In this document: positions 7,131-32,878 of the stretch, one piece after another
Position numbering within the stretch: position 1 is the first letter of the stretch
Layout: every line of letters begins with the position of its first letter
Assembly (NCBI GenBank): GCA_025603075.1
Contig: MU626269.1
Location: 1-64,000 of the forward strand
DNA length: 64,000 bases
Reading direction: 5' to 3'
Origin: Neoconidiobolus thromboides FSU 785
Lineage: Eukaryota > Fungi > Entomophthoromycota
Program-made: the position numbers and the translations under genes
The notes under the pieces: model-generated
The model's database searches: none
Seen by the model: only the letters and a program-made list of their open reading frames with translations
What the model was told of the DNA's origin: nothing

Positions 7131-8283
<1,153 letters not shown>

Positions 8284-9076: not shown

Positions 9077-9370
9077 AACTTACTAGAAAGAATAATTTGA
9101 AAAATTGCTTTAATAAAAATATTTTAAGCTTTTAATAACAATAACAGTTGGAATATTGATAAAGTTAAAGCTAAAGTTTTAGTATCAAACAAGTTATATA
9201 TTTTAAATTTAAATATTATGCTATATCATAAAAATATATTACAGTTAAGAAAGCTATATCTTACATATAGATTAAAGTTTCGTAATAAGGCAAATAACTT
9301 ATGATACAAGTTTGTCGCCATTTAAAATCAAAACCTGTTTTTTAACTAATATCAAACTGAAAAAAACAGT

Positions 9371-9473
9371 ACAGGAGTGTTTTTTTTGACTTCATTATTT
9401 TTCCATTTTTTAAGTGCTATTTAAGCGGAAAAATTGGTAGTAAAATTCTTAAACATAAAAATACATCCCCATA
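9371..9473 (-). mobile_element. ATAT-MITE copy 3
   Basis: Reverse-orientation match to the consensus; flanks degenerate. Confidence 0.85.
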
Positions 9474-9630
9474 CCATGGTTTTTTATTACATCATCATCT
9501 TAAGACTTTGAATTTCGGTCAAACTTTCAAAAATGTGGAACTAATTACATATCTCAAGATCATTAGCCATAATAACTTTTTTTATACTATTTCTTTAACT
9601 TTATTGCTTTAATTCTCAATTTACTATATC

Positions 9631-10243
9631 ATGACAAACAACAAAATATCAACCCAAGTACAAAAAGTGAATAAAAAAGCTCCCATAATAGTAGATTATA
9701 CAAACCTTGTATTACCCAAGGTAATCCACTCATTACACCAATTCAATATTAACATCAACAAAGCATATAGACATCATAAAAGCTTCTGAGGGGAGAGTCA
9801 TTCAAGAATTTATAGTAGAAGAAAAGCATTTGGTAACCATTTCAATTATTTTCTATCAATTATTTTGTAACTTCTTATTATTAAAGAATCCAAACCAAAA
9901 CCTCCATGGTGGATTTATAGCTTATTTAGTTGATGTCTGTGGTGCCTATGCATTATCTACCTTAAACTTAAAAAAGTCATTTGTTTCGATAGATATTAAT
10001 ATAAGTTATTTAGCTAATGCTAAAATCAATGATAGAGTTAGATCAGTAAATTGAATATTGGCATTTGAAAGTAAAGTTATTAACTATTGATAGGATGCTA
10101 AAGTAGATAAAATTAGTCAAAATTTAGCGTTTGTATCGGTGGAAGTATCAAGATTAAATGAGAATGGAGAGAAAGTGACAATTGCTTTGGGTAGACATAC
10201 TTTATTTTTAAAAAATAATAAGGCGAATAAAAATAAACTTTGA
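9631..10243 (+). CDS. Hot-dog fold acyl-CoA thioesterase (ACOT13/THEM2/PaaI-like), paralogue T1, 4 exons, C-terminus NKL
   Basis: NPNQNLHGGFIAYLVD (N-x5-HGG-x6-D spacing as in ACOT13), VSIDINISYL, ALGRHT. All three introns are GT-AG and in frame. Confidence 0.88.
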
Positions 10244-10666
10244 TAAAAATGTGGATAATATAAATCTTTTCATGTTCTACTTAATAAATGAAGTTTTGCA
10301 TTGAGCTTTATATTCAGAAATAGTAAACTGAGGACTGTTATGTTAAATACATAATATTGTCTTTAAAATAAATATACATTAAATGAAGCTTTAATACGAT
10401 AAGATCGAAGCGGAGTTTGAAGTAATAGAGGGCTAAACCATCATTGTTGAAAAGCACGAGCCATTCCTGTGAAAATTATTGCATAGTTCATAAATAAATA
10501 TCGAAACACTTTTCAATATTCGATTAGATTTTTTGAAATTTTATGCTGTATAAAAAATAATCAAAAAATGACGTAGAAAAAAATATTTTACCCAATTTAA
10601 GAATTCTTTTATAAGCATCTTGTAATTATCGTTTAACTTTAAATCAAATTTCAATTTAATGCCTAA

Positions 10667-11360
10667 ATGTCAACCAATCCATTAATAAACAGAATTCAAA
10701 ATATGAAGGTGTTTTTTTGACTTCATTATTTTTTCTATCTTTTAAGCGTTATTTAAGTAGAAGAATTATTAGTAAAATTCTTAAACGCAAAAATACATCC
10801 TCATATGGTGAAAGAAATTCGGCATCGATGTAATCATACAGACGCTATATTACTCAAGGTTAAATAATCTAACAAATTTATACACACTAGTACCGTTAAA
10901 GTATTTTCAAAGTACAGAACAAAAGAAGGAAAATTAGTCTAAAAGTTTATAGTTGAAAAATATTTGATACAATTATTGATTTTATTTATTAGCTTTTTTA
11001 AACCTTTTTTAAACCTTTTTAAAAAAGAATCGAATCTATAGTCTTCATCATAGATTTTTAGTTTATCTTGTGGATGTCTGTGGAGCTTATGTAATTTCTA
11101 CAATGCCTATGAAGAATTTCGGAGTTTTCGTGGGTATCAATATGAGTTACTTATCTAACATTAAAGTGATAAATCATAAGGAATTAATAAGAACTATTAA
11201 TAATACATGAAAGGAATCAAGAATTGATAAAATCGGTGGCAATTTAGCTTTTACGTCAATGGAAATATCTAGACTTGATGAAAATAAAAAGGCAGTGATT
11301 GTTATAGGAAGAAATACAATGCATTTACAAAATAAAGCTAATAATAAAAGTAAATTTTAG
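10667..11360 (+). pseudogene. Thioesterase paralogue T2, pseudogene
   Basis: MITE inserted in exon 1; frameshift and stop in exon 2; second donor GT changed to AT; HGG changed to HHR. Remaining exons align to the other paralogues. Confidence 0.88.
10701..10806 (-). mobile_element. ATAT-MITE copy 4, inside exon 1 of T2
   Basis: Element 10705-10802 is flanked by ATAT at 10701-10704 and 10803-10806. Removing it restores the reading frame. Confidence 0.95.
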
Positions 11361-11675
11361 TAAATATAAGTATCGATCGATATTACATATTCTGTAAAAT
11401 ATCTGGGCGTTTGAATACAACTTTCTATTGCACGCCATTAAATTAAGAAATCTGAAAATACAAAACAATAACTATATTCAAACTTTCAAAAGATCATTAA
11501 GATAATAGGTAATATCTTTTTTATTGCAGTATTTGACTAATGATTGTTTAAAATTCAAGCTACAAAAAAATGACAATGTGAAAAATAATGCTCGCTTTTT
11601 TTATTTAACTTAAGCTTTAGTTTCAATAAACAGTTTGATAATTTCCCAATCTCAAAAATTTATTTTTATAATATT

Positions 11676-12282
11676 ATGTCAGAAAACCAAATAATAAATG
11701 GAATACAAAACGCAATTGAACAGATTAGAGAAGGATCTGGTTATACAAGTATCGTTTTACCTGAGGTTAGAAATACTGATAAACTTGTCTCAATTTAATA
11801 TTATTAAAGTATTTTCAAACTATAGAAGGGGAGATAGGAAGATTAGTTCAAGAGTTTATTGTTGAAGAAAAGCATTTGGTAAAGACGAGTTTTAATCTAT
11901 CAGTTTTATTTTTTTATTTTTTTAAAGAATCCCGGTCATAGTCTTCAAGGAGGATTTATAGCTTACCTAGTGGATGCTTGTGGTGCTTATGTAGTTTCAA
12001 CTATCCCAAAAATTAATTATGGGGTTTCAGTGGATATTAATATAAGTTATTTAGCTAGTGCTAAATTAGGTGATAAAGTTACAGTAGTAAGTAAAATAAA
12101 AGTTTTATAAGGATTATTAATGAAAGTTAAAGGAATCAAGAGTAGATAAAATTGGACGTAGCGTAGCTTTTACATCAATAGAAATATCTAGAGTAGATGA
12201 AAATGACAAAAAGGTAGTGATTGCTTTGGGCAGACATACACTGTTTATGAAAAATAATGACACAAATAAAAGTAAAGTTTAA
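11676..12282 (+). CDS. Hot-dog thioesterase paralogue T3, 4 exons, C-terminus SKV
   Basis: MSENQIINGIQNAIEQIREGSGYTSIVLPE / ...NPGHSLQGGFIAYLVDACGAY...GVSVDINISYL... / ...ALGRHTLFMKNNDTNKSKV*. Confidence 0.88.
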
Positions 12283-12969
12283 TTGATATGTAGCGTTTTG
12301 AAGCTAACTATACAAATGAAGTATCTAGAACCTATATTGAGTTAAATGTTTGTTAATACTAAACCATTTGCTGCTGTGATTTAATTCATTGTTTTCAATA
12401 AAATACATAAAAAATTAATTTTAATAGAGTAAAACTAGAGCTTTGGTTTAAACTTATAATATAAGCCATTCTAACAATTACTGAAAAATATTGAAGCATT
12501 TATACAAAACCTTTAAAAAAAATCTTGAATTAAGTAAACAGTTTTACCCCTGATCTTACATATTTAGTTTTCATTGCTATTATGTTAACATAATAATAAG
12601 TTGTGAGACTTTTTTGTTAAATTGATATTTAAGATGTTTTCCTATTTCAATATTTCTAATTTTTTAATAAAATTGAACAAAATACAAGTCAAAAACCAAA
12701 GTCATACCACCAAGTTTTAATACGATAGCTTGGAAATCTGCCTTATATGGTAAATAGTTTGTAAATAAATAAAAAATGAAGAGAAACCTGCCTAGTAAAT
12801 AATCATATTACTTAATTTCAATTAATATTATCCAAGTAGTCCATTAGCTATTATTATATATTTAATGTGAATCTTACCAATCAATACATTGCTTTTGTCC
12901 AAAAGTAAACTAAGTTTCTATTAAATAAAACAATAAAACGATATACTACTAATTTAAAATGAAAACATA

Positions 12970-13075
12970 ATATGTGAATGTATTTTTGTATTTAAGAGTT
13001 TTACTAACAATTTTTCCACTCAAATAGTGCTTAAAAGATGGAAAAAGTGATGAAGTCAAAAAAACATCCTCATAT
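12970..13075 (+). mobile_element. ATAT-MITE copy 5
   Basis: ATAT on both flanks; consensus body. Confidence 0.9.
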
Positions 13076-13545
13076 AATAAATTTTAGTTATTTACTTATA
13101 TGAAATAAAGATCAGAAATAAAAATAGTAATTTTAAATATTGAAATTGTTGTAATATCAAGACAATTAATATTGTACATGTTTTTTCGCAATGTATTTTA
13201 ATCATTACATTTACCAACTAAATATATATAACATACGCTTATATTCAAATAATTGATGTTATAATAACATAACTTAATATACTAATATTGTAAATTGTAT
13301 TCTCAATAACAATGGAGATAATCGAAGATTAGTAAATCTAGTTAACTTAAAGTAAATATTGATAAATTAATAAAAAGGAATATAGCTATTTACTAACAAC
13401 GGACCGAAATTTTCCAAAAAAGATATTGGATCAATTTTTTGCCTGACCGAAAATCCAAGGAAAATAATCATTCACCATCTAATATTACAATAAAAAAGTA
13501 TAAAAAGCAATGAAAAGAGATTTAAAAAAGCTTTTGTAATAAAAA

Positions 13546-14648
13546 ATGAGTTTATTAAATACCTTGGATACTATTGCTTCAAGTAATAACGTTGTATCGG
13601 CATATAATGATGCCCCAGTAGACTATTTAATTAAAATAGTAGATTTAGCTTTAACTACTAACAAAGCAGTCTTCAATGTTGTAGAAGCTAAAATTAACGT
13701 ATGGATGCCAACATTGATGATAAATTTAAGAGAACAGACTTCTAGTTTAATCTCACCAATAAGTAAATATTTGCCATTGTTAGATCCTATCCAAGTGTTT
13801 TCTATTTTGTTTTTATATATCTTTGTTGTGTTTTTTTGGCTTAAAGTAGCTTCTAGCTTCCTCCCACGTTTCGAAGTAAGATTATTTTCCCTTTTCCATA
13901 ATTTCTGTATGGTCGTTTTATCTGCCTACATGTGCTCTTCTATCCTATTACAAGCTTATGCAGATAAGTATACTCTATTCACTAACCCCGTCGATCACTC
14001 TCCAAATGGTATTCCAGTAAGTTATTTTATTATTATTTGTGTATGATATTATATAATAATTAGTATTGCATAATATCTGTTCCTATTATCATTGCTATTA
14101 TGACAATTTATATTTACGTTTTTAATTAGATGGCTAAAATAATATGGTTATTTTATATTTCCAAAATCCCAGAGTTTGTTGACACTATGATTATGTTGAT
14201 TAAACAAAACTACCGTCAAATTTCCTTTTTACATGTATACCATCATAGTTCGATCTTTGCTATCTGGTGGGTTGTTACCTTGATGGCACCAAATGGCGAT
14301 GCTTATTTCTCAGCTGCATTGAATTCATTTATTCATGTTGTTATGTATGGATATTATTTACTCTCTGCACTTGGATTCAAATCTGTCTCCTTTGTTAAGA
14401 AATATATTACCATGGGACAAATGACTCAATTTGCACTCAACTTTATTCAAGCTAGTTATAATATTGTAGACAGAAATTACTTACGTCCACAAGTCCATGA
14501 ACAAGGATTAGCTTATCCTTATGCTCTTTCCGTCTTACTTTGGTTCTATATGATCTCTATGTTGGTGTTATTCGCTAATTTTTATATTCAAGATCGTATC
14601 CGTCAATCAAAGTTAAAGTCTCAACAAAAGGGAAAGAAAATGAATTAG
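13546..14648 (+). CDS. PUFA (delta-6-type) fatty acid elongase, GNS1/SUR4/ELO family, 2 exons
   Basis: SKIPEFVDT, QISFLHVYHH, NSFIHVVMYGYY and KKYITMGQMTQF are ELO motifs. One intron lies after GIP. Confidence 0.95.
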
Positions 14649-15220
14649 TATATAAAATGTTATTGTTATAAATAAAATAAAAAATTTAATTGAAAGTTAT
14701 ATTTTATTTTTCTCTAACAATATACTTTTTTATGTACTACTTTTAATAATTAGTAAATAAAGAAATCATTAGCTTAAAAAAGAGCACGTTTAGATAGTAT
14801 GTGGCATTACTTTTCAAAGAATAGTAGGCTCTTAAAATAATTCAATGAAAACGCTGTAAAGTAAAACAATGGTTATTGTAATTGGTTCTATCTTTTGAGT
14901 TTGATTATTTTTTTAGTTTAAAATGTAATTTGAAAACAAAAAATTTTACAATTAACCTTATATATTATTCTTATTCAACTAAACACTATTTTAAAAAACT
15001 ATGCAACTTTCAAAGTTGAAATTTTGGGATTTTAGTCCAATTTTGAAATAATCAAAGCAACCAATCATGCCATTTTATTTGGAGCATACTATTTTTCAAA
15101 AGTATTCCACATACTATAAGTTTTAAAAAAAATACTAATGAAAAAAGCTTAGTCACACTATACTTTAATCAAAATTTTAGAAAATCAAAAAACTATCTTT
15201 TTATTTAAACAATTGATTTA

Positions 15221-15914
15221 ATGGTAGAGTATAGTAAAAATTCAAAACTAAAAATAAGCCAAAATAAAGATAAACTATATGATGGAGAGGAATATGCAAA
15301 TATAGAAATAAAAAGAACCAAAGAAAAAAAGGATACACAAGCGTTAAATATTAGTGTTAATAAGCATAGCTTGTATGACGAGGAGGAAATCAAAGTCTTA
15401 GAAACTAAGAAGCAAAAAGAGCTTGACAAAATAGAAAAAATAATATGCAAAGTATGCAATATACTAGTTGAAAAAGACTACTATACAAAACATATAGTAG
15501 GTATTGCTCATAATTTGAAAATGGAATCTATCAAGGCTCCAAAGAATTTATTTATTAGGGCGGTGAGTTTCATTGTTATTTTTTTGAAATCATTTATTTA
15601 TTTCTTCTAGAATAATATAGGTTATAAACTATTAAAAAAGAATGGTTGGAAGTATGATAAAGGATTAGGTGCAAACGAACAAGGGATAAGAGAGCCTATT
15701 AAACCAAAGATTAAAAAAGACAGATTAGGAATTGGAGCTGGCAAAAGTAAAAATGAAGTGTTAAAACCAAAGGTAAATCATAGTCATTCGTAAATAATAT
15801 AAGATTGTAACCATTAACGAATAGATTAACCGGTTAACTCAAAGGGAAGTAGTCAAAGCTGAGGAAATGGAAAGAATGAAAAGAATTAGAATATTAAATT
15901 ATCTAAATAATTAA
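15221..15914 (+). CDS. G-patch domain protein (GPANK1-like) with a zinc-finger-like CxxC...H...H
   Basis: CKVC...HIVGIAH followed by a spliced G-patch NNIGYKLLKKNGWKYDKGLGANEQGIREPI and C-terminus RIRILNYLNN*. Confidence 0.75.
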
Positions 15915-15958
15915 AAAGAATCAAAGCTAGTTGATGCTAAGTCTACTTAATTTTATTT

Positions 15959-16869
15959 TTAAAATTCCAAAGTCTGCTTTTTAAGTAAAGCTTTCATCCC
16001 AGGCGCAATTCTAGGTTCTCCTTGGGCATCTTTAACATAGCGAAAAGGCATAATTGTGGATTCACTATAAGTAGGTCAACATGCTAATAAAATGGGTAAT
16101 TATAATAATTAGTTTACTTTTTGTTAAATTTAATCTCTGGATTATCTGCAAATTGAATATCATTAAACTTGATTTTATCTTCCAATATCAGTTTTGTGGT
16201 CAAAACAGCATGATCCGTAGTCATCTGTTCTTTCCCAAGGTTACGAGCTAGTAATAGAGTATTATTGAATTAGTTCTAATAAAATTAATAATCTAAATTA
16301 CATTTGAAGCCTAATTTTCTTAATTCTATAGTACGATCCCTATATAAAGTTAATTCAAAAATACGATTAGCTGTTAATTATTTTTTACTTACTTTACAAT
16401 GCAATCTATTGCTTCAGTATCTTCATCACCTAATCAACTATTAGATTATTTTGATATTATTTTGACTTGACTTCTTTACCCAAAATGCCACCAAATAAAA
16501 CGTAGTCAAACTCACTAACATCCTCTGGTGCTAACACTTTATCGGATTCTTGATCCAACAAACAAATCTAATAAATCAAAGTTAATTCTATAAATATACT
16601 AAATCATCTCGAAAATACCCTATCAAATGGTAAACCAAGATCTAAAATATCTTTTTGGGAACATAACTCCTTTGATACATTCTCAGGCATATCTTTGATA
16701 TGTTCTTGTGGTACCTTTGTAAACAGTAAGTTATCTTTACCTACAACTTGACTCATATGCGAATATTCTAGTTGGCACCTTAGGTTTTCGTTAGTTGATT
16801 TTCATAGGGAATTAACATTGTTTACCATTCGTAGACCTCCTCTTCCATATGCTCAACAATGTATTTCAT
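15959..16869 (-). CDS. SFM1: SPOUT-family protein arginine methyltransferase Sfm1, multi-exon
   Basis: MKYIVEHMEEE, LEYSHM, ICLLD, FDYVLFGGILGD, RNLGKEQMTTDHAV and MPFRYV follow yeast Sfm1 order. Confidence 0.88.
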
Positions 16870-17146
16870 TTTGACTTTGATTGGAAAAAAAATAAAGAAA
16901 AGATAAAAAAATAAAAATCAATAAAAATCAATAAAAATACAAAATATAGGATAAAAGAATATAAAGAATCATATACTTTGCTACTTTAGTAAGTAAAATC
17001 CCATACTTTTTAACTTATCATTTTAATAATATGAATAAGACAAAATCACCCAAATTTAAAATTTAATTTAAAACCAACAATTAAATAATTCATCTATTAC
17101 ATTTTATTTTATCCTTAAACAAGTAATCCCCACTATCATTAATCCT

Positions 17147-17533
17147 TTAAATAACCTTGGGAGCTAATGAAAGTACTTTAAGCCATTGTTTTTGACGCAA
17201 TTCATTAGCGACTAAACCTAATACACGGGTACCAAGGGGCTGTTGAGAAGCATTAAGTAAAACACAAGCATTATCATCAAAACGGATATATCTACCATCA
17301 GCTCTACGAATTTCTTTCTTACATCTAACAATTACTGCTCTTTTAACATCTCCTTTTTTAACTTTAGCAATACTATTCCCTCTTTCTGTATTAATTGGTT
17401 TAGCTTTCTTAACAGCTACTACAATCTCATCACCGACGCTAGCTACTTTCCCATTGCGCAATACTTTGATACATTCGACAAAGATAGCCCCTGAATTGTC
17501 TATAACGTTGAGGATACTTTTTAGTTGGATCAT
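17147..17533 (-). CDS. MRPL38: Mitochondrial ribosomal protein uL14m
   Basis: [48 protein letters not shown]; single exon. Confidence 0.95.
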
Positions 17534-17703
17534 TTTTTATTTTTGTTTTAAAAGTTAAAAACTAGCTAGAAGATTTGAAAATTAAAAGCTTCGAGAGTTT
17601 TTTTTTAACCAATCATTTGCAAGTTAAAAGCTGATATATTTTTAAAAGTCAAAATAAATGTAGATAAAAGTAGTCTATATTAAACAATAAAAATTAATCA
17701 AAT

Positions 17704-20093
<2,390 letters not shown>

Positions 20094-20375
20094 TTTTGAA
20101 TTACTTTCTCTAGTTTACTACTTGTGACAAGTATAGTATAGCTGTCAATATTAAGAAAAAAGTTTGTTTTGAAAAATTGAGTTTTTTATCATTTCTGATT
20201 GGAAGTTTCTAGAATTTATGGATAAATTTTGACTCCTTTTTATAATTGATCGTTATCTGATCAGGGTTAATTAGTCTAGTTGATATTATTTAACTATTTT
20301 TATTTAAATTAAATGTAATATAATAATAAAAAGCAAAAAAGATTGATATGTGAAATTATATTCCGCTTGCTTTAT

Positions 20376-21412
20376 TTAATTGGATTTTTTGTCTTTTAAA
20401 TTGCCCATTCTTTTACGATCATTAATATAAAAGTGAACAAAAAGAGAAAGCATAGAGATCATGTATAGTAATAATAGGCATGATAGGAAATGAGGATAAC
20501 CGCCATTATTCAAATGTTTTTCTGGCCGGAAGAAATAATAATCCAAAATATTAAATGATGCTTGAATAAAATTTAAAGAAAATTGAAGGATCTGAGCTAT
20601 AGTTATATACTTCTTAATAAAGCTCACAAAACTTAATTTCAACGCAGAACCAAGATAATAGGAATACATTAAGATATGTATAAAGGTGTTTAAAATGGTG
20701 GAAAAATAAGTATCCCCATTAGGACCAAATAAAGTAACTAACCACATTACTATGAATATTGAGGTGTGATGATACACATGTAAGAATGAAACTTGGCGAT
20801 AATTCTTTTTTAATAACATAATAATGGTATCATTAAATTCAAATATTTTAGAAAAATAAAATAGCCACACTATTTTGGTCATCTAAATAATGTTATAAAT
20901 ATGAGTATAATTATATAAAATAGTAATCTTACGGGTATGCCAGTAGGTGTAATATCGATAGGGTTACCGAATAGAGTATAGTTATCATGTATAGTCTGTA
21001 GACTTGTAGCAATAAAAATATAAGCTGAAATTACAATCATAAAGGAATTATGAACCATTGAAATTAATCTTAAGTTATATTTTTTAATCGTATCATTATT
21101 ATATAGTAAATAAACTATAGTCAAATAAATTGATAGTATTATAAATACTTCTGTCAACTTCATCAGAGGCAATGATTCGCTATTAGAGATACTCCTAGTC
21201 TTTATTAAGCTTTCTAACTTTTCAATGAGATTTTTACTATTCTTATTGATCACATTTTCAATCGCATGGGTATAAGGACTGAAATAAAAACTCAATTTTT
21301 CAGTGAACTTTAATATTATATCTACTGGTAAATCGTAATATGCTGCTTTTACATTGTATTGCTTACAAACCGAGTTTAATTTATCTATATTCATTGTGAT
21401 AACTATTAGCAT
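20376..21412 (-). CDS. Second ELO-family fatty acid elongase (divergent paralogue), 2 exons
   Basis: SKIFEFNDT, QVSFLHVYHH, NTFIHILMYSYY. The intron (20883-20932) is at the same GIP/M position as in the first elongase. The start may be the ATG at 21394. Confidence 0.92.
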
Positions 21413-21712
21413 TAAAATCGATTGTGTATTTTATTTATACTTTGAGTTTACCCTTAATCGTTATCCCTTCTTTTAAGAGCCAATCAAATCGGTTACTACT
21501 AATCCCTTTATTTACCCTTTTTTATCTGTTTGAAGTATTATATTAAGCTAGTAATTACTATTGACAATACCAATATATCATAACATTTACATAAATAATA
21601 AAGAAATTACAAAGACAATTTTAAATTAATAAATAATTTTTTATTATTACATAGAACTTAACTCCGGACTATTATTAAACCTCAAAAACTCAATTTCATT
21701 AAACTCGATTAT

Positions 21713-22234
21713 TTAAACCATAAAAGAAACAGTCCATGAGAACCAATTTAAAGCAGACAATGTGGTAAGAATAAAAGGTACATTGAGTGCACAGATAGTT
21801 GATAATTGATTAGGTTCAAGAGGAGCAACTGGGTAGTTAATGAACCAGATAATGGAAGCAACCATCCAAATAATAGCAAATAATAAACTGAAGCATTCTT
21901 GTAAGCCTGGAATGGAAGTCAAAGTTGTCCAACAGTTTGGAATGGCTTTGTAGATAGTATCACTATCTGAGACCATCAAAGAGAATAAAAAGGTCAACAA
22001 GGAAATAAACTGATTTGTACGTTGTAGTAAACCAACGGGTTGATTCGCGTATATAGGATGTTGTAAAATGTAATAACCGTAAAATATAAAGTAAGCACCA
22101 GATAATAAACATTGGCTCAATTTATTACAGTCTTGGAAATCGATATTATGTACAGTTTGTTTGGTTTGGGTGGCATTGCTATTGTTATTTACAGTAGTAG
22201 TACTGGTAGTATTATTTAAAGTCGTAGAACTCAT
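21713..22234 (-). CDS. Uncharacterised four-helix membrane protein, possibly MARVEL-like
   Basis: 173-aa single-exon ORF with ATG and GC above background. It has a Thr/Asn-rich N-tail and four hydrophobic segments; helices 3 and 4 (ECFSLLFAIIWMVAS, LSALNWFSWTVS) resemble MARVEL patterns. Confidence 0.7.
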   Translation of the reverse strand: MSSTTLNNTTSTTTVNNNSNATQTKQTVHNIDFQDCNKLSQCLLSGAYFIFYGYYILQHPIYANQPVGLLQRTNQFISLLTFLFSLMVSDSDTIYKAIPNCWTTLTSIPGLQECFSLLFAIIWMVASIIWFINYPVAPLEPNQLSTICALNVPFILTTLSALNWFSWTVSFMV

Positions 22235-23757
22235 ATTAAAACTAAAATTGAATTAAAAAATAAGAAGCAATTATTATTTTATAAAAATTATAATTATTTT
22301 AATTTTATAACCGGTATTTTTATACTTTGATTTTATTGATTTCTTGCTATACCTAAAATAACTTTATGGGGTACCTTTAAGCCTTTACATTATGCACCCC
22401 TAATTTGGTGCAATAAAGAAGGTAGAAATTACTTTATTTTCTCCACTTTAACCAATCAAATTAGTTATCCCCCATTCAGCTAGATGGGATTAAATCTAAC
22501 AATCTAAGGCATGAAACCTACAATTGTAAGTCACAACGCTTTTTCAGCAACTTTGAAATTGACCCCTTCTTTTGCATTTTCTTTTTACTATGCTTCTTGA
22601 TTTATTTTTAATTGAATTATGTCCAATTAAATGCTCATTACATGGTAAAGATGTGATTAAAATCAAAAGTTTTACTTTAATACATTATTGCTTTTAAAAA
22701 TTACAGTTTTTATGCACTATGAAATAATAGTTTTCAATATTACTTTATCTATTTAATTTTTAAAAAGTTAAATAACAATAGATTTAAATGGCGCTGAGAC
22801 AATATAATATAAAAGTTGGCTATTAAATGACTGTTTTAAAAAATAATTACGTAGTTCAGACAATGATCAGGATAAATAATAACTTTTACAATCTTTTTAT
22901 TAGTTCATGTATTAAATTTATTTAATAATTACTTGTTAAATAGTATAATTTTAAATAAGGTGATAATAGTTGTAAATTTTGACATTTAAAATACAAAAGG
23001 CTGTTCATAAGCAAAATTACGTAGTTCCTATAGGAATCAATATACAAATTTACTTTTATTAGCTTCAGTTAATTCATTCTATTAAATTTATATAATAATT
23101 ACATATTAAATAGCATAGTTGTATCTTATTAAAGTAATCTAATTAAATCCAAAGCTTAATACTCACAATTATTGTTGATATAATGGTATTTAAATCACAA
23201 ACCTTTTTATATAAATTAGATCCGCCTGAGTTTTATCATTGCATTTTAATTGTATTTGTTCATAGAGATTATAACTAATTGAATAAATGTCAGCAACTTT
23301 TTATTAACTTCATGTCTTTTAAATAAAACTTTAGTTTTGAAAATATCTTTTAACATTTATATTGATTTAAAATGTGAAGTTAAATTTAAAAAATAATCAC
23401 TGCTTTAGGAAATCTTTTTAACTACACAGACTAAAAGATCTGAGGCTAAAAATCCACTATTAGGAGCGTTAGTTAAGTTCTTGAAAGCAAGCTAATTTTC
23501 CAGCTATAAATATTAAATTTTAATATCAACTATTGCTAAATATAGCCCATATTTATTCTTAATTTAGAACAAACAATATAATTTAAGAATTTATACCTTT
23601 AGTTAATCAATTATTCACTATATTAGTACTCAAACATGATCATTAAAGTAACTTTTAACAAATAATCAGTCTAAAATAATAGCAATTTATTAGCTTTACC
23701 TTCATTTTATCTACAATCAAAAGAAAGTATGAGACAGACATTATTAGGTGAAGAAAT

Positions 23758-23860
23758 AGTAGAAATGTTTTTTTTAGTTTCATCACTTTTTCCATTTTTT
23801 AAGCCTATTTGAGTAGAAAAATTGTTAGTAAAATTGTTAAGCAAAAAAATGCATCCCGTA
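23758..23860 (-). mobile_element. ATAT-MITE copy 6
   Basis: Reverse-orientation body; termini eroded. Confidence 0.8.
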
Positions 23861-24136
23861 ATGTTACATTATTTTATCTTTCATGCTGCCTTTAATTTCT
23901 ACATTTAAAAGACTCTATAATGAATTTGAAACTTTATTACTGTTAAAAAAAACAACTACAACTAATAGAAAATTCATAGCCTTTCTTGTCTCATAACGTT
24001 TACTAATTCGAAATTCATGGCTATTACCCCCGATGGTTATATTAGTTTGTAGAATTCTCTAAATTTAGATTTGAAAAATGTAGAGTATAAATAACAAAGA
24101 TTTAAGCCTTACACTTTTTAAATTTTAAATTTTATC

Positions 24137-24745
24137 ATGTCAGATCCAAACACCCAAAGGTTAAACAGAGTTCAAAATGCGGTAGAAATGATCCGCATTA
24201 TGTCCAGCTATACAGATATCGTGTTACCCGAGGTAGGCAATTCAACCTATTAGTTCATTTTAATATTATTAAAGTATTTTGAAACCATAGAAGCTGACAA
24301 AGGTAGAATAGTACAAGAGTTTATTGTCGAAAAAAGGCATTTGGTACATGCTTAAATTCTATCCCATTATATTTTCTAATTTTTTAAAGAACGGCGATCT
24401 TAGCATCCATGGAGGATTCTTGGCTTATCTAGTGGATGTATGTGGTACCTATGCAATTTTGACTTTGCCAAAAGATAATGTTGGTGTTTCAGTGGATATC
24501 AATATAAGTTATTTGGCTGGTGCTAAAGTAGGCGAAAAAATTAGAGTTGTATGTAAAATAAGTTATTTAATGAAGATTACTAATAAACATAATAGGAATC
24601 AAGAGTGGATAAAATTGGACGCAGTTTGGCCTTTACATCAGTAGAGTTATCCAAGGTAAACAAAGATAACAAAAAAGTGATAGTTGCTTTGGGAAGGCAT
24701 ACCAAATTTTTGAAAGGAAATACTAAAATTCCAAGTAAATTGTAA
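24137..24745 (+). CDS. Hot-dog thioesterase paralogue T4, 4 exons, C-terminus SKL
   Basis: NGDLSIHGGFLAYLVD, GVSVDINISYLAGAKVGEKIRV, ALGRHTKFLKGNTKIPSKL*. Confidence 0.92.
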
Positions 24746-25335
24746 TAGAAGTTAGAGTATTATAGAAATTGTAATGTTATGAGTAATAAAAAAGAGCTAA
24801 ATGTTGAACTTTACATTCAAGTATAATTGAACAGTCTACAAATTTTCATTCTGCCCTTTTTAAGGTACATGCTAAATATAACTTTTTTATTGAAAAATTA
24901 TAATTTTGATATGAAATTTTATTAATTTAAATAACTCTGAAGAACTACTGTGTGTTTAAATATAATAATCATCAAAAAACCAGATTTCTATTTCAGCTTC
25001 ATGGTCTAAATTTTATAGAGCTATTACCCTTTATATTACTTTTCTAAAGTTGCAACTTAATTCAAAATTGGCTAATTTCTGACAATATACCAAATACAGA
25101 GAATTTTGCATTAGGCATTTAAAACAACTTACTCTTGAAACAAAACTACAGACAAATAGCTAATGATATTTAAAGGTTTACCTTTTTCCAATATGTCTTT
25201 ATCAGAAAGTACCACCTGTTTTATTAAAGATCAAGGTCGGATTCTTAAAAATCAAAACTATTAATATATTTTTACAAAGACCTAAAAAAAAAAAGGATTT
25301 TGTTTTTACTATTTTTAATTGATTCATCATAAATA

Positions 25336-25440
25336 CATGGGGATGTATTTTTGTATTTAAGAGTTTTACTAACAATTTTTCCACTCAAATAGTGCTTAAA
25401 AGATAGAAAAAGTAATGAAGCCAAAAAAACATCTCTGTAT
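25336..25440 (+). mobile_element. ATAT-MITE copy 7
   Basis: GGGGATGTATTTTTG start; consensus body. Confidence 0.88.
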
Positions 25441-25647
25441 TCTTAATATTCTTGACACTAGTTGTGGAATTTTTGGTTTTTTAGACCTAATGTCCAGCAC
25501 ACGCTGTTATCTTGAATATTTTAACCAAAAGTTCAATTCTGAAGCCCTGTATTACGAGTGAGCGTAAGTTAAATCTTTAAAAACTATATAACATACTCTC
25601 TTATATATTTGAAGTTGAATTTAAATTTAGCTGTTGTCAAAAATAGG

Positions 25648-25753
25648 ATATGGGGATGTATTTTTGTGTTTAAGAATTTTATTAACAAATTTTCCGCCCA
25701 AATAGCGCTTAAAAAATGGAAAAATAATGAAGTCAAAAAAAACACTCCCATAT
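25648..25753 (+). mobile_element. ATAT-MITE copy 8
   Basis: ATAT on both flanks. Confidence 0.92.
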
Positions 25754-25903
25754 ATATTATCAATAATTTTGTGCTTTTGATATCATACAGCAAGTGGTTA
25801 ACTATCAATGTATCTTTATAGCTAGTCTATTGTTTACTATACAAATAATCAAATTTTATACATAAGGCGAATAAATGAATAGTTTGATTCTTGGTTGATT
25901 GTT

Positions 25904-26014
25904 ATATGGGGATAGGCTATATTTTTTTGCCTAATAATTTTATTAACAATTTTTCCACTCGAATAGTGCTTAAAAAATGGAAAAAGTTATGAAACCAAAA
26001 AAACAGCCCCATAT
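25904..26014 (+). mobile_element. ATAT-MITE copy 9
   Basis: ATAT on both flanks; short insertion in the left TIR. Confidence 0.9.
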
Positions 26015-26598
26015 GCTCTGGGGGATTTTATACAAAAAATAATTTATTAGTTCTAACACTAAGTAATTTTTTAAAAACGAAAAATCTCTCAATTTAAGAG
26101 GATACTAAACTGTAGTCATATACTCTAGTTCTTCTTAAGTGATTGAAATCTACTAGCATATAGCAACTTATTTAGCAGGCACGATAAATCTAGCCTATTT
26201 TTCAAAAAATTTTATTTACCTCAATAAAATCAAATTTTAAATTTAACTGTTTATAACTAAAATCAAATAAGAATGGAGCGAAATAAACCAAACAAAATGG
26301 AATAACAATATTGTACCATTTTATTCTTGGAGTTGCTTTTTATTTCTGTATTTATAAGGATCTTCAATGAGCTAGAACTTGAACTGCTATTAATGAGCAA
26401 TACTCGTAAAGAAAATAAAAAAGGCCATAGCCTTAATTATTTCATGTGAATATATTATTCACAATTCGAGGCCGTTGGGTCCTATTAAATTATATTATTT
26501 TTGGTAATTCTCTAATGATAAGATAAAGTATAAATGCCAAACTTTAGGGCTTTAACTCTTCAATTCTTTAATTCTCTAATTCTTTGATTACTTTTACT

Positions 26599-27211
26599 AT
26601 GTCGGACTCAGCCGCCCGAAGATTAAACAGACTTCATAAAATGGTAGAATTGACCCGCAAGGTATGCGGCTATACAAGAACTGTGTTACCCGAAGTAAGA
26701 AGTTTTATACACTAGTTCATTTTAATATTATTAAAGTATTTTGAAACCATAGAAGCTAACGAAAGAAGAATAGTACAAGAGTTTATTGTCGAAAAAAGGC
26801 ATTTGGTATGTATTGAAGTTAATGCTCATCGTTATATCTTAACACCTTTTTAAAGAACAACGACTCTAGCATCCATGGAGGATTTCTGGCCTATTTAGTG
26901 GACATGTGTGGCAGCTATGCAATTCTGAATTCACTCAAAGATTACTGTGGGGTTTCAGTGGATATCAATATAAGTTATTTAGCTGGTGCTAAAGTAGGCG
27001 AAAAAATTAGAGTGGTAAGTATAGAAAACCTTTTATTAAAGGCTATTATTAAATACAGTAGGAATCAAGAGTGGATAAAATTGGACGTACTTTGGCCTTT
27101 ACATCAGTGGAATTATTCAAGTTAAATGGGGATAATAAAAAGGTGGTGATTGCTTTGGGAAGGCATACCAAATTTTTGAAAAGAAATACCAAGGCTTTAA
27201 GTAAATTATAG
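26599..27211 (+). CDS. Hot-dog thioesterase paralogue T5, 4 exons, C-terminus SKL
   Basis: NNDSSIHGGFLAYLVD, GVSVDINISYL, ALGRHTKFLKRNTKALSKL*. Confidence 0.92.
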
Positions 27212-27403
27212 TGGATATTAGAATACTATATGGGTTGTAATATATGAAATAAAAGGGAATTTATGCTAGACTGTAAGCTCAAAGGATTATTAGTTATTAT
27301 AAATTATTACATTCTCTTATTTTTCAAACTTACACATCAGATACATATTTATAGTAGGAAAAGTAAAACTTTCAACCAGTTTAGTTGTAGAAATTTGTTT
27401 TAT

Positions 27404-27507
27404 TTGAGGATTTTTTTTTGGCTTCATTACTTTTTCCATCCTTTAAGCATTATCTAAGCGGAAATTTTATTAGTAAAATTCTTAAATATAAAAATACATC
27501 CCCATAT
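27404..27507 (-). mobile_element. ATAT-MITE copy 10
   Basis: Reverse body ending ACATCCCC-ATAT. Confidence 0.88.
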
Positions 27508-28543
27508 TCTATAATATTTCAGCGAAGTTTTTAATTTTTTAGACTTACTATGCAATATATCCCATCTTTTCAAATGTAAAAACTAAAGATTTGAGTTTAA
27601 AATTCTCTATTAAAGATGAGTATAAGTTAATTTACTAGAAATTATTCGAGCTTCCCTGTTATACACATTTCTTTTAAACTCAACCATGCTAAATGTGCTT
27701 CGTATTTTTTAAACTATAAGATAAATAATTCAAGTAGGAATTTATGGTTAGAATTAATTTGTCATCTACTATATAAATCCTTTAAGACTACAACTGAATG
27801 AGCTTTATTAAATGTTTGGTCTGAAATAGCTATAGCAAAGCATTGATTTCATTTCTATTTCATTTCTATTTCATCTTTTATAATCAGAAGTAAAGTACGA
27901 AAAGAACAAAAGTGTAATAAAAGGGACAGTAGTGTACGATATATTTTCGTTTATAATTTACACACTTTCCTAAAAAACGGACATTTTTGAATAAAAATTT
28001 TGCCATATATTTGAAAAAAATTATGCATTTTCTAGTAAACTCAAGGTCAAATTCTTCACATCCATACATGAAAATGCGTGTGTTTTTTCAAGTAAATAAC
28101 AAAATACATATTTGAAAATGTTCATTTTTTTATATGAAAGTGCTTAAACCATTAATGAAAATAGTGTATTTATGAAATAGATAAAAAGAATTACATTCTT
28201 TTGTTTAAAAGGTTTTCCAATGAATCAAAGCTTGTGCAGTTACAAAGGAACATTGGTTATAGCTATTTTCTTAAAATCTTGAGCCCAATAAGGCAAGTGT
28301 CTTTATTATTTATAGATAGATAAGGCCAAAGAAGTTAGGAGGCCAATTATCTAGAGAGTCAATTCCAATATTACTTATAAATTAATAAAAAAATTTATAG
28401 CCTTTTTTGTCTCTTTACAATTACTAATTCAAAATGAGGCTATTGGCTCCGATTAAATTAAATTATATTTTCGACTATTCTTCAACAACAGACTAAGGAT
28501 AAATAGTGAATTTTGGAACTTGCATTCTTTAATTACTTTTACC

Positions 28544-29155
28544 ATGTTAGACTCATCCACCGAAATATTAAGCAAAATCCAAAAAGCGGTAGAAGCTATC
28601 CGCACAATGTGTGGTTATACAAGCATCGTATTACCCAAGGTTAGATAACCAAATACACTAAACAATTTTTAATATTATTAAAGTATTTTGAAACCATAGA
28701 AGCTAAAGAAGGGAGAGTAGTCCAGGAGTTTATTGTTGAAAAAAGACATTTGGTACATGCTTAAATTTAGATCTGTTACATTTTCTGATTTTTTTAAAGA
28801 ACGGCGATCTTAGCATCCATGGAGGATTCTTGGCTTATCTAGTGGATGTATGTGGTACCTATGCAATTTTGACTTTGCCAAAAGATAATGTTGGTGTTTC
28901 AGTGGATATCAATATAAGTTATTTGGCTGGTGCTAAAGTAGGCGAAAAAATTAGAGTTGTATGTAAAATAAGTTATTTAATGAAGATTACTAATAAACAT
29001 AATAGGAATCAAGAGTGGATAAAATTGGACGCAGTTTGGCCTTTACATCAGTAGAGTTATCCAAGGTAAACAAAGATAACAAAAAAGTGATAGTTGCTTT
29101 GGGAAGGCATACCAAATTTTTAAAAGGTAAAGGGGGAGGTGTAAATAAGCTATAA
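28544..29155 (+). CDS. Hot-dog thioesterase paralogue T6, 4 exons, C-terminus NKL
   Basis: Same exon structure as T4; exons 3-4 nearly identical to T4; ends KGKGGGVNKL*. Confidence 0.92.
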
Positions 29156-29819
29156 TGTATCTTAGAGTGTTACAAAGCTTGCAGCATCATTGGATAAAGA
29201 AGTATTGATCCTGAATTGTATGCTTGATGGTAATAAATGACAATGATTATAATTAATAGCATTTAATTCTTTCCTTAAATGTATACGTCAAGTGCAAGTT
29301 TTATTTATAGAAGTTGCTATAACTATAGCCCAACATTTAATTTTTTAGTTGATAATGGCTTGGGGAGCATTGAAGTATTTATTGTGAAAAATTTAGGAAG
29401 TGCTTACTATTCTATTTTACTTTATTGCTTAAATTTTATAAAACTGTGAGCGTGAGTCATATTACTGCTTTCAATAAGTTGCAATGCCATTGTGTAAATA
29501 AAAGCATTTTATTAACATTGTTATGTGTATTTTGCATAAAAATATTTAAAATGATTTCAAGAATGTCAATATTTAAAGAATGACTTATTTTTTAAAAACA
29601 GTTTAGAGTTTTAGAAAGTATACTTAAAGACGAGAAATCCAAATAACTTTTAATGTTTGAAATTTTATTAGCTACTTTATCTAGGTTGTAAGAACTTGTT
29701 ACACTTTGTATCTGCTGTTTATAATTTACTTTTCTGCACTTTGTATTTTTCAATATTATACTTTTTATTGAAACTAGACACCATTAATTTTAAAATTTGA
29801 TAGCTGTTTTATGGAAAAG

Positions 29820-29919
29820 TATGGAGAGATGTTTTTATTTCGTCGCTTTTTCCATTTTTAAACACTATTTAAATGAAAAATTGCCAGTAAAATCCTTAAA
29901 TAAAAAATATAACCTCATA
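29820..29919 (-). mobile_element. ATAT-MITE copy 11 (degenerate)
   Basis: Reverse-orientation partial match. Confidence 0.7.
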
Positions 29920-30252
29920 AAATCTAACAAAAATTATAACAATATTTCAAAAAAATGTTTCAACTTTTAAATTTGATAATAACTTTAAAATCATTTCAAG
30001 TCAATTGTTATTGAGAACTTTAAAATGCTTTAATAGTTTCCAATCGTTAGCTCGAAATAGCAGGTTTTTGAACCTTGTACAACTTTTAGTTGCAATCATA
30101 TTATTATTTCTAAAAGGATATATTCGGCTACATGAGTTCAAGGGTGATATAATAGACTTTCTTAATGACAAGTATTTTTTTGTATACAAAATCCGATATG
30201 TGCCCTCGTTTATTTCATATAGCACAGAACATCTATAAGATTCGGATGCCTA

Positions 30253-30830
30253 CTACAATTTGCTTTTATTTACATCGTTGTCTTTTAAAAACACTGTATG
30301 CCTCACCAAAGCGGTTATAGCCTTTTTATCATTTGCATTTTGCTTAAATAGCTCTACTGATGTGAAGCCTAAATTGAGCCCAATTTTATTTACTTTTGTA
30401 TCCTATCAATTATGGTTAGTATTTTTTCTAACTATTTTTTGTTAATTTCCCACTTTAACTCTATTTTCCACTTTAGCACTGGCCAAGTAACTTATACTAA
30501 TATCTACCACAATCCCGGGGTACTTTTTAAGGGTAATTAATATTGGATAGACAGCATAATGATTTACAAGGTAAGCTATAAATCCATCATAAATACTATT
30601 CTTGGGATTCTTTAAAAAATTAAAAAGTAATTGATGGATTAGAATCTATGTTTTTATTGAGTGTTTTTCAGTAATAAACTCCTGAACTACTTTTCCTTCT
30701 TTAGCGTATATGGCTTTAATATACTATAATCATTAATATATACTAATATATGAAACTGTTTCCTATGGGTAAAATAATGCCTATATAATTAGGTCTTTTA
30801 TCAGACACTACGCCATTTTTTTGTACTTTG
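30253..30830 (-). pseudogene. Thioesterase paralogue T7, probable pseudogene
   Basis: Exon 4 DTKVNKIGLNLGFTSVEL...LVRHTVFLKDNDVNKSKL* is intact. HGG/D are changed to YDG/N, the intron-3 donor reads GG, the intron-2 donor is not recognisable, and the candidate ATG is followed by TAG. Confidence 0.8.
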
Positions 30831-31928
30831 TTTGTTATTTGGTTGCCTGTCATTCTTTAGTAAATTAAATTTAAACGGCAAGATTGATAAGTGATTCAAT
30901 TACTACCTATTATAACTGACAACTTACCTAAGTGATACATTCTTTTCAAAAAATTCACCCGAATTTATCTATCTTTTAATAAGACCATTTGATTAAAAAA
31001 TTGCTCAGGTTTAAATCTCAATAGTTTTTTATTAGATGCTCTTTAAGCTATCTGATATAGTTTACTCAAAAAGAACAGCTAGTCTATTTTTGAAACTACT
31101 TATAGAATTGATATACTACAATTTAACTTATTAATTTTAAGCATTGTTCTATAATAAATCAAAATTAGGGTTGATGTTAGAGTTAAGATACAGTGCTAAT
31201 ATAAATTGTTCTAATTTCAATGTTATCTTCGTTAGCTTCAAGGTTAGCTTTGTATTAATTATAGTATTAATATTAACGCAATTATAATATTTATATTAAA
31301 GCTAATATTAAATTTTGGCTAGTTTTGTATTATATTTTATATTGATAGTTTTTAAGATATAAAGGTATTAAACGGATTGTAGGACTAATTTAATATAATA
31401 ACATGCTCATGTGATTCCAAGACAAAGCGTTTAGTTACCGGGATTGTTTATAAATAAATAAGTGAGTTCTTTTTAATATATAACAAATTTTTAAAGACTA
31501 TTTCATGTTTTAAACATTAAGAGTCATTCCAAGAATTATCACAAATACACCTTATAAAATAGCTCTTCAAGTATACCATATTAAAATATCAATTCAATTA
31601 TGAGAATAATTTATTAGAACATAATTGAGCAGAAAAGTTGACAGTTTATACTTGGAAAAACGACTGTTGGTTTTGCTATTTTATTAAGTTTCACTGTGTT
31701 AATTTCTTTATTGCTTTTCAATCCTCGCTGGTCAAAACATAATGTCTTGTTTTATTATACTTTAGTCAGGATTCTATGTTATTCTAGAGGTTTTTTGCTT
31801 GAATATATTTTAAGGATATATACAAATGGTCATAGCCGATTTGATTTTGCAATTTTTTAAAATGAAACTCAATATAAGTCTTAATTATTTCATATACTAT
31901 AATAACATTTATTATACATATGTACTTT

Positions 31929-32539
31929 TCACAATTTACTCTTATCTCCGTTACCATTTTTAAAAAACACTGTATGTCTTCCCAAGGCGATTATGACTTT
32001 TTTATTATTTTCATCCTGTCTAGATATTTCTACTGCTGTAAAAGCTAGACTACGTCCAAATTTCTCCACTTTTGATTCCTTTTAACTACTATTAATAGCC
32101 CTTTCAATTTTTTAATTAATTTACCACTTTGACTTTCTCGCCTACTTTAGCACCAGCCAAATAACTTATATTAATATCCGTTGAAACCCCAAATTTCCCT
32201 TTAGGCAAAGTCATAACTGCATAGGCACCACCATTATCTATAAGATAGCCTATAAATCCACCATGGAGACTTTGACCAAGATTCTTTAATAAAAAGGTTT
32301 AAAAAGTAATCAACAGATTAAAAATTGTAACTCTACCAAATGCTTTTTTTCGACAATAAACTCTTGAACAACTCGCCCTTCTTCAGCTTCTATGGTTTGA
32401 AAATACTTTAATAATATTAGTATGTACTAGTATATTAGAAGCTGTCTACCTTAGGTATTATAGTGCTCGAATAGCCACAATTTTTACGAAAATGCTCTAC
32501 TACACTTTGTACTTTATTTACTATTGGATTTTCTGACAT
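31929..32539 (-). CDS. Hot-dog thioesterase paralogue T8, 4 exons, C-terminus SKL
   Basis: MSENPIVNKVQSVVEHFRKNCGYSSTIIPK / ... / NLGQSLHGGFIGYLID...GVSTDINISYL / ...ALGRHTVFFKNGNGDKSKL*; all introns GT-AG. Confidence 0.92.
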
Positions 32540-32777
32540 TGTATAATAAATTAAAAATGAAAACTTTGAAGGTTGGTATTTATATTTAATTTATGGTTGA
32601 GTAATTATTGAGAATAGTCATTAGAGGACAATCGGAGCCAATAGTCTTGCGTTCTGAATCATCAAGTGTCAAGGTAAGAACTATAAACCTTATTAATTTC
32701 AAAGCCAAATTTTGCAATAATCCGCTTTGCCTCACTAAAGGGCTTTTTGATTTTAAAAAATCAAAAGGGAATAATAC

Positions 32778-32878
32778 ATTTAATACATTTTTATATCCAA
32801 GAATTTTACTAACAATTTTTCTACTTAAATAGCGTTAAAAATGGAAAAAGTAATGAAGCGAAAAAAAAACATCTATAA
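32778..32878 (+). mobile_element. ATAT-MITE copy 12 (degenerate left end)
   Basis: Body matches the consensus. Confidence 0.75.

Follow-up and report, generated by a model that had tools for sequence, protein, structure and literature searches.

The window analysed here covers the initial 64 kb of contig C12 (209,837 bp) of Neoconidiobolus thromboides FSU 785, an entomophthoralean fungus that infects insects. It contains an array of eight genes for small hot-dog thioesterases of the ACOT13 (THEM2) type, which we call T1–T8, together with two ELO-family elongases, E1 and E2. The left cluster of the array, T1–T3, occupies 9.6–12.3 kb and the right cluster, T4–T8, occupies 24.1–32.5 kb, with the elongases between them. 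The assembly comprises 24.6 Mb in 799 contigs with about 26% G+C. No telomere repeats were found at the start of the contig, and a subtelomeric position for the array, which was considered, was dropped for this reason. The positions of all mapped features are collected in Table 1.

Structure and family of the array genes

A tblastn search with exon peptides cut from the window recovered exactly eight ACOT13-like copies in it, and a six-frame search of the whole genome found these eight and one unlinked copy, T9, on contig C62; eight of the nine copies are thus contained in a single 23-kb region. Only two other loci with a 4HBT domain, on contigs C34 and C134, were found in a genome-wide scan for this domain. 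Each copy was mapped by its separate exons onto P0002, a public protein identical to the T4 model, and identities and dN/dS values were summed over the separate exons rather than derived from a joined spliced protein.

All nine copies consist of four exons separated by three phase-0 introns of 42–54 nt at identical positions. In T1, T3, T4, T5, T6, and T8, every exon is open and every boundary has GT..AG, with 18 splice-site pairs kept, while T2 and T7 are pseudogenes. The six intact paralogues are 46–85% identical to one another at the amino acid level, with T1 as the most diverged copy (46–54% identity to the others). The divergence is greatest in exon 1, which encodes the N-terminus and shows 20–53% amino acid identity between copies compared with 51–100% in exons 2–4. 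An earlier reading of the same stretch, hereafter the original prediction, had described eight paralogues with a common four-exon structure, six of them intact and with diverged N-termini, extending from the ATG of T1 at 9631 to that of T8 at 32539 on the minus strand; both searches and the exon mapping confirm the number and structure of the copies, the state of the exons and their junctions confirms that six are intact, the identities in exon 1 confirm the divergence, and the two coordinates are exact.

Public annotation labels the array genes only as "Thioesterase/thiol ester dehydrase-isomerase" and provides models for five of the six intact copies. Three public models of ACOT13-like copies look wrong: that of T3 (P0009) runs into intron 3 and ends at 113 aa, that of T6 (P0001) uses other 3' splicing, omits the final 26 codons of exon 4 and thereby lacks the NKL terminus, and that of T9 (P0012) is without exon 1, though the DNA holds this exon with a GT donor.

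Several comparisons place the array in the ACOT13/THEM2 family, as had been predicted. The open reading frames of exon 3 in T1, T3, T4, and T5 match PF03061 (4HBT) at 25–39 bits with a cut-off of 20.6, and the genome-wide six-frame scan for 4HBT matches T1, T3, T4, T5, T6, T8, and T9. The closest solved relatives by sequence are the fish, mouse, and human THEM2/ACOT13 proteins (PDB 4ord, 2cy9, 2h4u, 2f0x). A search of 1.8 billion protein representatives gave 1,420 matches, and among those looked up are animal ACOT13 proteins at 45–47% identity. The AlphaFold model of T4 (predicted local distance difference test score, pLDDT, of 93.4) has one long central helix (63–79) and six strands; its top Foldseek match is human THEM2 (hTHEM2, 3f5o), with E = 2.4e-14 and a target-normalised template modelling (TM) score of 0.90.

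The active-site set of hTHEM2 consists of Asn50, Gly57, Asp65, and Ser83 (PMC13114782, Table 4). In the sequence alignment, these residues map to N56, G63, D71, and S89 of T4; the four columns are invariant or nearly so in an alignment of 40 sequences, and all four residues are retained in T1, T3, T4, T5, T6, T8, and T9. In T3 the motif HGG is replaced by QGG, and the changed His lies outside the catalytic set. Judged from these sequences, the six intact copies are predicted to be enzymatically competent.

The picture is different in the two pseudogenes. Exon 1 of T2 is split by a repeat of about 100 bp (about 10703–10806), exon 2 has an in-frame stop at 10940–10942, and the third donor is changed from GT to AT at 11169–11170; HGG has become HHR, and two of the four catalytic residues are lost (Gly to His, Ser to Phe). 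In T7, in addition to the loss of splice donors (Table 1), HGG has become YDG, and three of the four are lost (Gly to Asp, Asp to Asn, Ser to Val).

The fold would also suit a different chemistry, in which the paralogues cleave non-fatty acyl-coenzyme A (acyl-CoA) substrates, that is, aromatic or hydroxy-aromatic esters such as hydroxyphenylacetyl-, 4-hydroxybenzoyl-, or naphthoyl-CoA, in the way of plant DHNAT and of PaaI. The array would then belong to a peroxisomal pathway of specialised metabolism or detoxification rather than to bulk lipid metabolism. E. coli PaaI and Arabidopsis DHNAT1 (1,4-dihydroxy-2-naphthoyl-CoA thioesterase) share the fold of the T4 model, several "small thioesterases" of plant peroxisomes carry a type 1 peroxisomal targeting signal (PTS1) (PMC3355810), and both the fast-evolving N-terminal exon and the His to Gln change in T3 would fit substrate diversification. 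However, THEM2 is much closer (35–42% identity, with the TM score given above) than DHNAT1 or PaaI (19–22%), and the window showed no gene of an aromatic pathway. We hold this alternative to be unlikely, and we treat the array below as one of ACOT13/THEM2-type acyl-CoA thioesterases.

C-terminal tails, duplication history, and decay

As the original prediction had it, the paralogues carry PTS1 tails, at least in the sense that a PTS1-like tripeptide ends all eight array copies; we accepted (S/A/C)-(K/R/H)-(L/M), as well as recognised variants of it, where the tail is exposed. The canonical SKL is found in T4, T5, T8, and the pseudogene T7, and variants are found in T1 and T6 (NKL), T3 (SKV), and T2 (SKF). 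By analogy with examples from yeast and plants, NKL, SKV, and SKF may act as PTS1 variants. The tripeptide ends a tail of about 10 residues beyond the conserved GRHTKF motif. This tail is the only low-confidence segment of the T4 model (pLDDT 53 in the last block), and the C-terminal extension is therefore probably flexible. ACOX genes are present in the genome, indicating that peroxisomal beta-oxidation exists in N. thromboides, and the array proteins are predicted to be peroxisomal.

PTS1 is absent in most of the fungal homologues inspected, namely those of six Mucorales species, Entomophthora muscae, Syncephalis, and Dimargaris; an SKL tail was found in one paralogue of Mycoemilia scoparia and in Paraphysoderma sedebokerense. 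E. muscae has a single ACOT13-like copy. T9 is also without PTS1 (Table 1), and the signal appears to have been gained within the lineage.

In a maximum-likelihood tree of public full-length proteins, from which T1, T2, and T7, having no public models, were left out, T3, T4, T5, T6, and T8 form one clade (support 100/99) that is sister to T9 (98/97), and the array clade and T9 together fall within ACOT13-like proteins of early-diverging fungi. No Conidiobolus coronatus orthologue is among the best representative matches listed. Synonymous divergence (Nei–Gojobori dS) is lowest for T4–T6 (0.21), followed by T4–T5 (0.40), T5–T6 (0.58), and T3–T8 (0.61), and reaches 0.88–1.2 between T1 and the other copies. 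The nearest relative of T8 is therefore T3, which lies in the opposite cluster and on the opposite strand; this means that the left and right clusters are not independent local expansions and that the locus has been rearranged. At about 600–750 bp, the duplicated units are short, each comprising the gene with about 120 bp of promoter.

A tract of 332 bp is identical in T4 and T6, while its flanks are only 75% and 53% identical, which points to recent gene conversion between these two copies. Taken together, the pseudogenes, the conversion tract, and a clade sister to a copy without PTS1 bear out the proposal of a lineage-specific birth-and-death expansion, and by these comparisons the array is such an expansion, with gene conversion.

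A repeat of about 100 bp resembling a miniature inverted-repeat transposable element (MITE) occurs in 21 copies in the 64-kb window, which are 80–93% identical (reference copy 9360–9490). Thirteen of the 21 fall at 8.9–33.9 kb, where they occupy array spacers, and one is inside exon 1 of T2. The element may promote rearrangement of the array.

Among thioesterase pairs, dN/dS is 0.27–0.51, with values above 1 for exon 1 in some pairs, and these ratios indicate that selection on the intact copies is purifying but relaxed to moderate. The promoters also show conservation. An exact 15-mer, CTATTGGCTCCGATT, which contains a reverse CCAAT box, precedes T6 by about 100 nt from the ATG and recurs before T8; the box is degenerate before T4 and T5. 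TATAAAT stands about 50 nt before the ATG, and the combination of CCAAT and TATA is kept by T4, T5, T6, and T8.

These data bear on the view that the array is mostly decaying, redundant DNA made of drifting duplicates, in which the PTS1-like tails are inherited relics. Two of the eight copies are indeed pseudogenes, the dN/dS values of 0.3–0.5 are those of relaxed selection with exon 1 above 1 in some pairs, and MITEs are dense in the spacers. On the other hand, six copies have kept their reading frames, 18 of 18 splice-site pairs, and the four catalytic residues despite dS values of up to 1.2; dN/dS over the whole gene is clearly below 1, the CCAAT and TATA promoter is conserved in four copies, and all but one of the six intact copies have a public gene model. 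We consider general decay very improbable, in favour of six maintained genes beside two decaying ones.

The elongase pair and its relation to the array

Both elongases carry the motifs KxxExxDT, QxxFLHxYHH, NxxxHxxMYxYY, and TxxQxxQ and a C-terminal KKxx di-lysine signal; the list of ELO motifs was taken from PMC8073319, and the motifs were read from the translations of E1 and E2. E1 has KIPEFVDT, QISFLHVYHH, NSFIHVVMYGYY, and TMGQMTQ and ends in KKMN, and E2 has QVSFLHVYHH and ends in KKSN. The second exons match PF01151 at 152 and 143 bits, respectively. Each gene has one intron at the same codon, and the two are 61% identical in exon 2 and 35% in exon 1. The genome has about six ELO loci, of which these two are mutual closest paralogues; none of the others exceeds 42% identity.

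The Hashimoto criterion recognises elongases of polyunsaturated fatty acids (PUFA) by a Gln (or His) at −5 relative to the HxxHH box (PMC8073319). E1 and E2 have Gln at this position, whereas the elongase locus on contig C22 reads LEFLHWYHH instead. The assignment of both to the PUFA type in the original prediction is borne out by this signature, while their substrate specificity is a prediction; the ESM Atlas describes exon 2 of E1 as "ELO family" only, with no subtype. Two further ELO loci, on contig C79, have an unusual box, SLLQCYHH or SLLQSHHH, in place of FLHxYHH (L004, about 1290–1571; L007, about 947–1222); the latter locus is interrupted by in-frame stops and is possibly a pseudogene.

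Synonymous sites between E1 and E2 are saturated (proportion of synonymous differences, pS, 0.80), compared with dS values of 0.2–1.2 in the thioesterase pairs. This indicates that the E1/E2 duplication long predates every duplication in the array and that the two families expanded at different times. A single inverted segmental duplication that would have produced E1 and E2 and both thioesterase clusters at once was rejected because of this saturation, given a dS of 0.61 for T3–T8.

Three housekeeping genes, for an SFM1-like arginine methyltransferase, a mitochondrial-type ribosomal protein uL14, and a class-II fumarase, lie between the elongases, in agreement with the prediction that such genes are interleaved. 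Directly upstream of E2, an open reading frame of 173 aa (21713–22234, minus strand) encodes an orphan membrane protein that has several hydrophobic segments and an N-terminus rich in Asn and Thr; no Pfam match was found for it. To the left of the array lies another housekeeping gene, for galactose-1-phosphate uridylyltransferase, in a single exon with both GalT domains (7297–8316, minus strand).

The question is whether the array and the two elongases form one acyl-CoA tailoring locus, as had been proposed. In such a locus, elongation to PUFA or very-long-chain acyl-CoAs at the endoplasmic reticulum (ER), chain shortening in the peroxisome, and release by thioesterases would be linked, similar to the Sprecher route of animals, and might serve growth on insect lipids; the use of host-cuticle lipids suggested in the original prediction is speculative. 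The arrangement is suggestive, since thioesterase clusters stand on both sides of the E1–E2 block, all within 23 kb, and both elongases have the PUFA-type His box with Gln at −5 (PMC8073319). For Conidiobolus obscurus, a delta-6 elongase has been described (Tan et al. 2011, as cited in PMC10890106). If roughly five distinct ELO locations are spread over 24.6 Mb, any particular 23-kb span would hold one by chance in about 0.5% of cases; however, this argument is weakened by the fact that many lipid-related families would seem meaningful post hoc.

The promoters offer one possible link. The box ATTGGCTC occurs before E2, T6, and T8 and is the only word that the array promoters have in common with an ELO promoter, but it is a generic CCAAT-type box that is also present at two unrelated sites of the window, and the observed count was reached in one of 100 shuffles. 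A k-mer search for words common to all thioesterase and elongase promoters found none at 8–10 nt, the shared array box being confined to T4, T5, T6, and T8.

Other observations argue against a common pathway. The elongase pair is far older than the thioesterase expansion, and the block includes the three housekeeping genes. The active sites of ELO enzymes work at the ER membrane, not in the peroxisomal matrix, where the thioesterases are predicted to reside. A metabolic gene cluster is recognised by the co-location of further pathway genes, but the genome has all seven of its fatty-acid desaturase loci and all five of its ACOX loci on other contigs. In E. muscae, S. fuscata, M. scoparia, and P. 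sedebokerense, all four of them distant relatives of N. thromboides, no ELO gene was found within 10 kb of the ACOT13-like gene or up to the contig end.

The E. muscae gene has no relevant neighbour, and that of S. fuscata adjoins a thiamine pyrophosphate (TPP) enzyme and a DAO-type dehydrogenase. In M. scoparia, the gene ending in SKL adjoins three tandem MAPEG genes (L009, 650–4996, contig JANBPU010000556.1), which encode membrane proteins acting in the metabolism of eicosanoids and glutathione; such a lipid-flavoured neighbourhood is unlike that of the N. thromboides array. In P. sedebokerense, a second 4HBT gene follows the SKL copy some 1.7 kb downstream, with an unannotated gene of 168 aa between them (L010, 10001–13093), indicating that small tandem duplications of the ACOT13-like family occur elsewhere.

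Overall, the proposed coupling of elongation to peroxisomal acyl-CoA release is not supported by the duplication ages, the location of the desaturase and ACOX genes, the neighbourhoods in other fungi, or the generic CCAAT box; as all four comparison species are distant relatives, it is unsupported rather than refuted. A tailoring locus seems to us unlikely, and the adjacency of the elongases to the array is most likely positional and not the mark of a functional unit.

Table 1. Coordinates of array genes, elongases, intervening genes, and repeated or promoter elements in the window (T9: contig C62)
Feature	Position	Strand	Exons and remarks	C-terminal tail
T1, intact ACOT13-like thioesterase	9631-10243	+	exons 9631-9720, 9764-9832, 9887-10045, 10094-10240 plus stop	NKL
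T2, pseudogene	10667-11360	+		SKF
T3, intact	11676-12282	+	exons 11676-11765, 11810-11878, 11928-12086, 12133-12279	SKV
T4, intact	24137-24745	+	identical to public protein P0002 (157 aa); exons 24137-24232, 24275-24343, 24390-24548, 24596-24742	SKL
T5, intact	26599-27211	+	identical to public protein P0003 (157 aa)	SKL
T6, intact	28544-29155	+	exons 28544-28639, 28684-28752, 28800-28958, 29006-29152	NKL
T7, pseudogene	30253-30853	-	donors of introns 1 and 2 lost	SKL
T8, intact	31929-32539	-	identical to public protein P0004 (155 aa); exons 32539-32450, 32405-32337, 32283-32125, 32078-31932	SKL
T9, unlinked copy	contig C62, L001, about 5428-5990	-	no PTS1	KES
T4/T6 identical tract, 332 bp	24380-24711 and 28790-29121	+	flanks 75% and 53% identical
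E1, ELO elongase, 329 aa	13546-14648	+	exon 1 13546-14016, intron 14017-14129, exon 2 14130-14648	KKMN
E2, ELO elongase	20376-21412	-	exon 1 21412 (or 21394) to 20933, intron 20932-20883 (50 nt), exon 2 20882-20376	KKSN
SFM1-like arginine methyltransferase	15962-16756	-	multi-exon; housekeeping, between E1 and E2
Mitochondrial-type ribosomal protein uL14 (uL14m; PF00238)	17147-17533	-	single exon
Class-II fumarase (Lyase_1 plus FumaraseC_C)	17704-19284	-	multi-exon; 5' end outside mapped part
Promoter box CTATTGGCTCCGATT, T6	28440-28454	+	exact 15-mer, reverse CCAAT, about 100 nt before ATG
Promoter box CTATTGGCTCCGATT, T8	32630-32644	-	exact 15-mer
MITE copies	572-664, 8891-8987, 10709-10805, 12962-13070, 23766-23857, 25337-25439
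MITE copies	25649-25748, 25920-26003, 27407-27506, 29847-29919, 32787-32868, 33556-33650
MITE copies	33762-33861, 40206-40296, 47469-47562, 47899-47985, 56159-57191		four copies in 56159-57191

Proposed origin of the array and comparison with known systems

We consider it probable that the array is a tandemly expanded, lineage-specific set of peroxisome-targeted hot-dog thioesterases of the ACOT13/THEM2 type, shaped by birth and death and by gene conversion, and that the adjacency of the elongases is positional. According to this model, an ancestral ACOT13-like gene without PTS1, represented today by T9, would have been duplicated; one duplicate would have gained a flexible C-terminal tail ending in PTS1, and this copy would have multiplied to eight. 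Six copies would then have stayed under moderate purifying selection, with the N-terminal helix diverging fastest, while two would be decaying. PEX5 would bring the proteins into the peroxisomal matrix, where they may form homotetramers like THEM2 and hydrolyse acyl-CoA thioesters, releasing CoA and free acids, the latter probably being beta-oxidation intermediates or end products. Substrate preference probably varies among the paralogues, and the pair of PUFA-type ELO genes would be an older, independent local duplication.

Several considerations weigh against this model. The array stands on both sides of the elongase block, and T3 is closest to T8, which shows that the locus has been rearranged. 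A selective reason for keeping the elongases inside the array may exist. NKL, SKV, and SKF are non-canonical, putative variants of PTS1. Finally, "lineage-specific" means only after the split from the sampled taxa, which lie outside Neoconidiobolus and Conidiobolus.

A bolder version would combine a neofunctionalised battery of peroxisomal thioesterases, graded in their import signals and each with its own chain-length preference, with an embedded and co-selected pair of delta-6-type elongases, which together would set the unusual output of fatty acids and eicosanoid precursors of this aphid pathogen through ER elongation, peroxisomal trimming, and release. If true, it would represent a rare gene cluster for primary lipid metabolism in an early-diverging fungus, but we regard it as quite improbable. 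Returning to the expansion of peroxisome-targeted thioesterases, the array establishes neither a new kind of system nor an elongase–thioesterase pathway. Its interest lies elsewhere: six paralogues on the THEM2 scaffold form a natural series for mapping the determinants of acyl-CoA specificity, the SKL, NKL, and SKV tails form such a series for the strength of peroxisomal import, and birth and death, gene conversion, and disruption by a MITE can be seen together within 23 kb of the genome of an early-diverging fungus. The array also suggests that peroxisomal acyl-CoA handling has been elaborated in this lineage; speculatively, this could relate to growth on insect lipids.

Among known systems, animal ACOT13/THEM2 (PDB 3f5o, 2f0x, 2cy9, 4ord) is the closest, with a single hot-dog domain of about 140–157 aa, the identity and TM score cited above, the same catalytic set of Asn, Gly, Asp, and Ser, and the GRHTK motif. 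The THEM2 chains of human, mouse, and fish in the PDB are 138–149 aa long, without the tail of about 10 residues of the N. thromboides copies. Animal ACOT13 is a single-copy gene that is not known to carry PTS1, and its product is cytosolic or mitochondrial; in N. thromboides, by contrast, there are eight clustered copies with PTS1-like tails.

The elongases resemble PUFA-type ELO proteins, such as the delta-6 elongase of C. obscurus and the ELOVL2/4/5 group, in PF01151, Gln at −5, the ELO motifs, and the di-lysine signal, and this likeness is one of signature. The ACOT13-like genes of Mucorales, E. muscae, Syncephalis, Dimargaris, M. scoparia, and P. sedebokerense belong to one orthogroup with the array genes (38–51% identity), in which SKL is sporadic, and in Paraphysoderma a pair of annotated 4HBT genes lies within about 3 kb. 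Our searches found one or two ACOT13-like genes in each of the other fungi compared with nine in N. thromboides, eight of them in their own clade.

The peroxisomal "small thioesterases" sT1–sT5 of plants, including DHNAT1/2, end in AKL or SKL, have been found in peroxisome proteomes, and are expanded in rice (PMC3355810). They are likewise small single hot-dog thioesterases, and DHNAT1 has the same fold; unlike the array genes, they are not arranged in one eight-gene array, and DHNAT1 (about 19% identity) belongs to a different branch of the 4HBT superfamily, with naphthoyl-CoA as the DHNAT substrate. Neither the enzyme family nor its fold is new, and small hot-dog thioesterases tagged with PTS1 are known as well, the plant sT1–sT5/DHNAT proteins being the published example (PMC3355810), and no published description of the present thioesterase expansion was found in the literature searched. 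What is particular to N. thromboides is the size of the expansion, together with a PTS1 that appears to have been acquired within its lineage.

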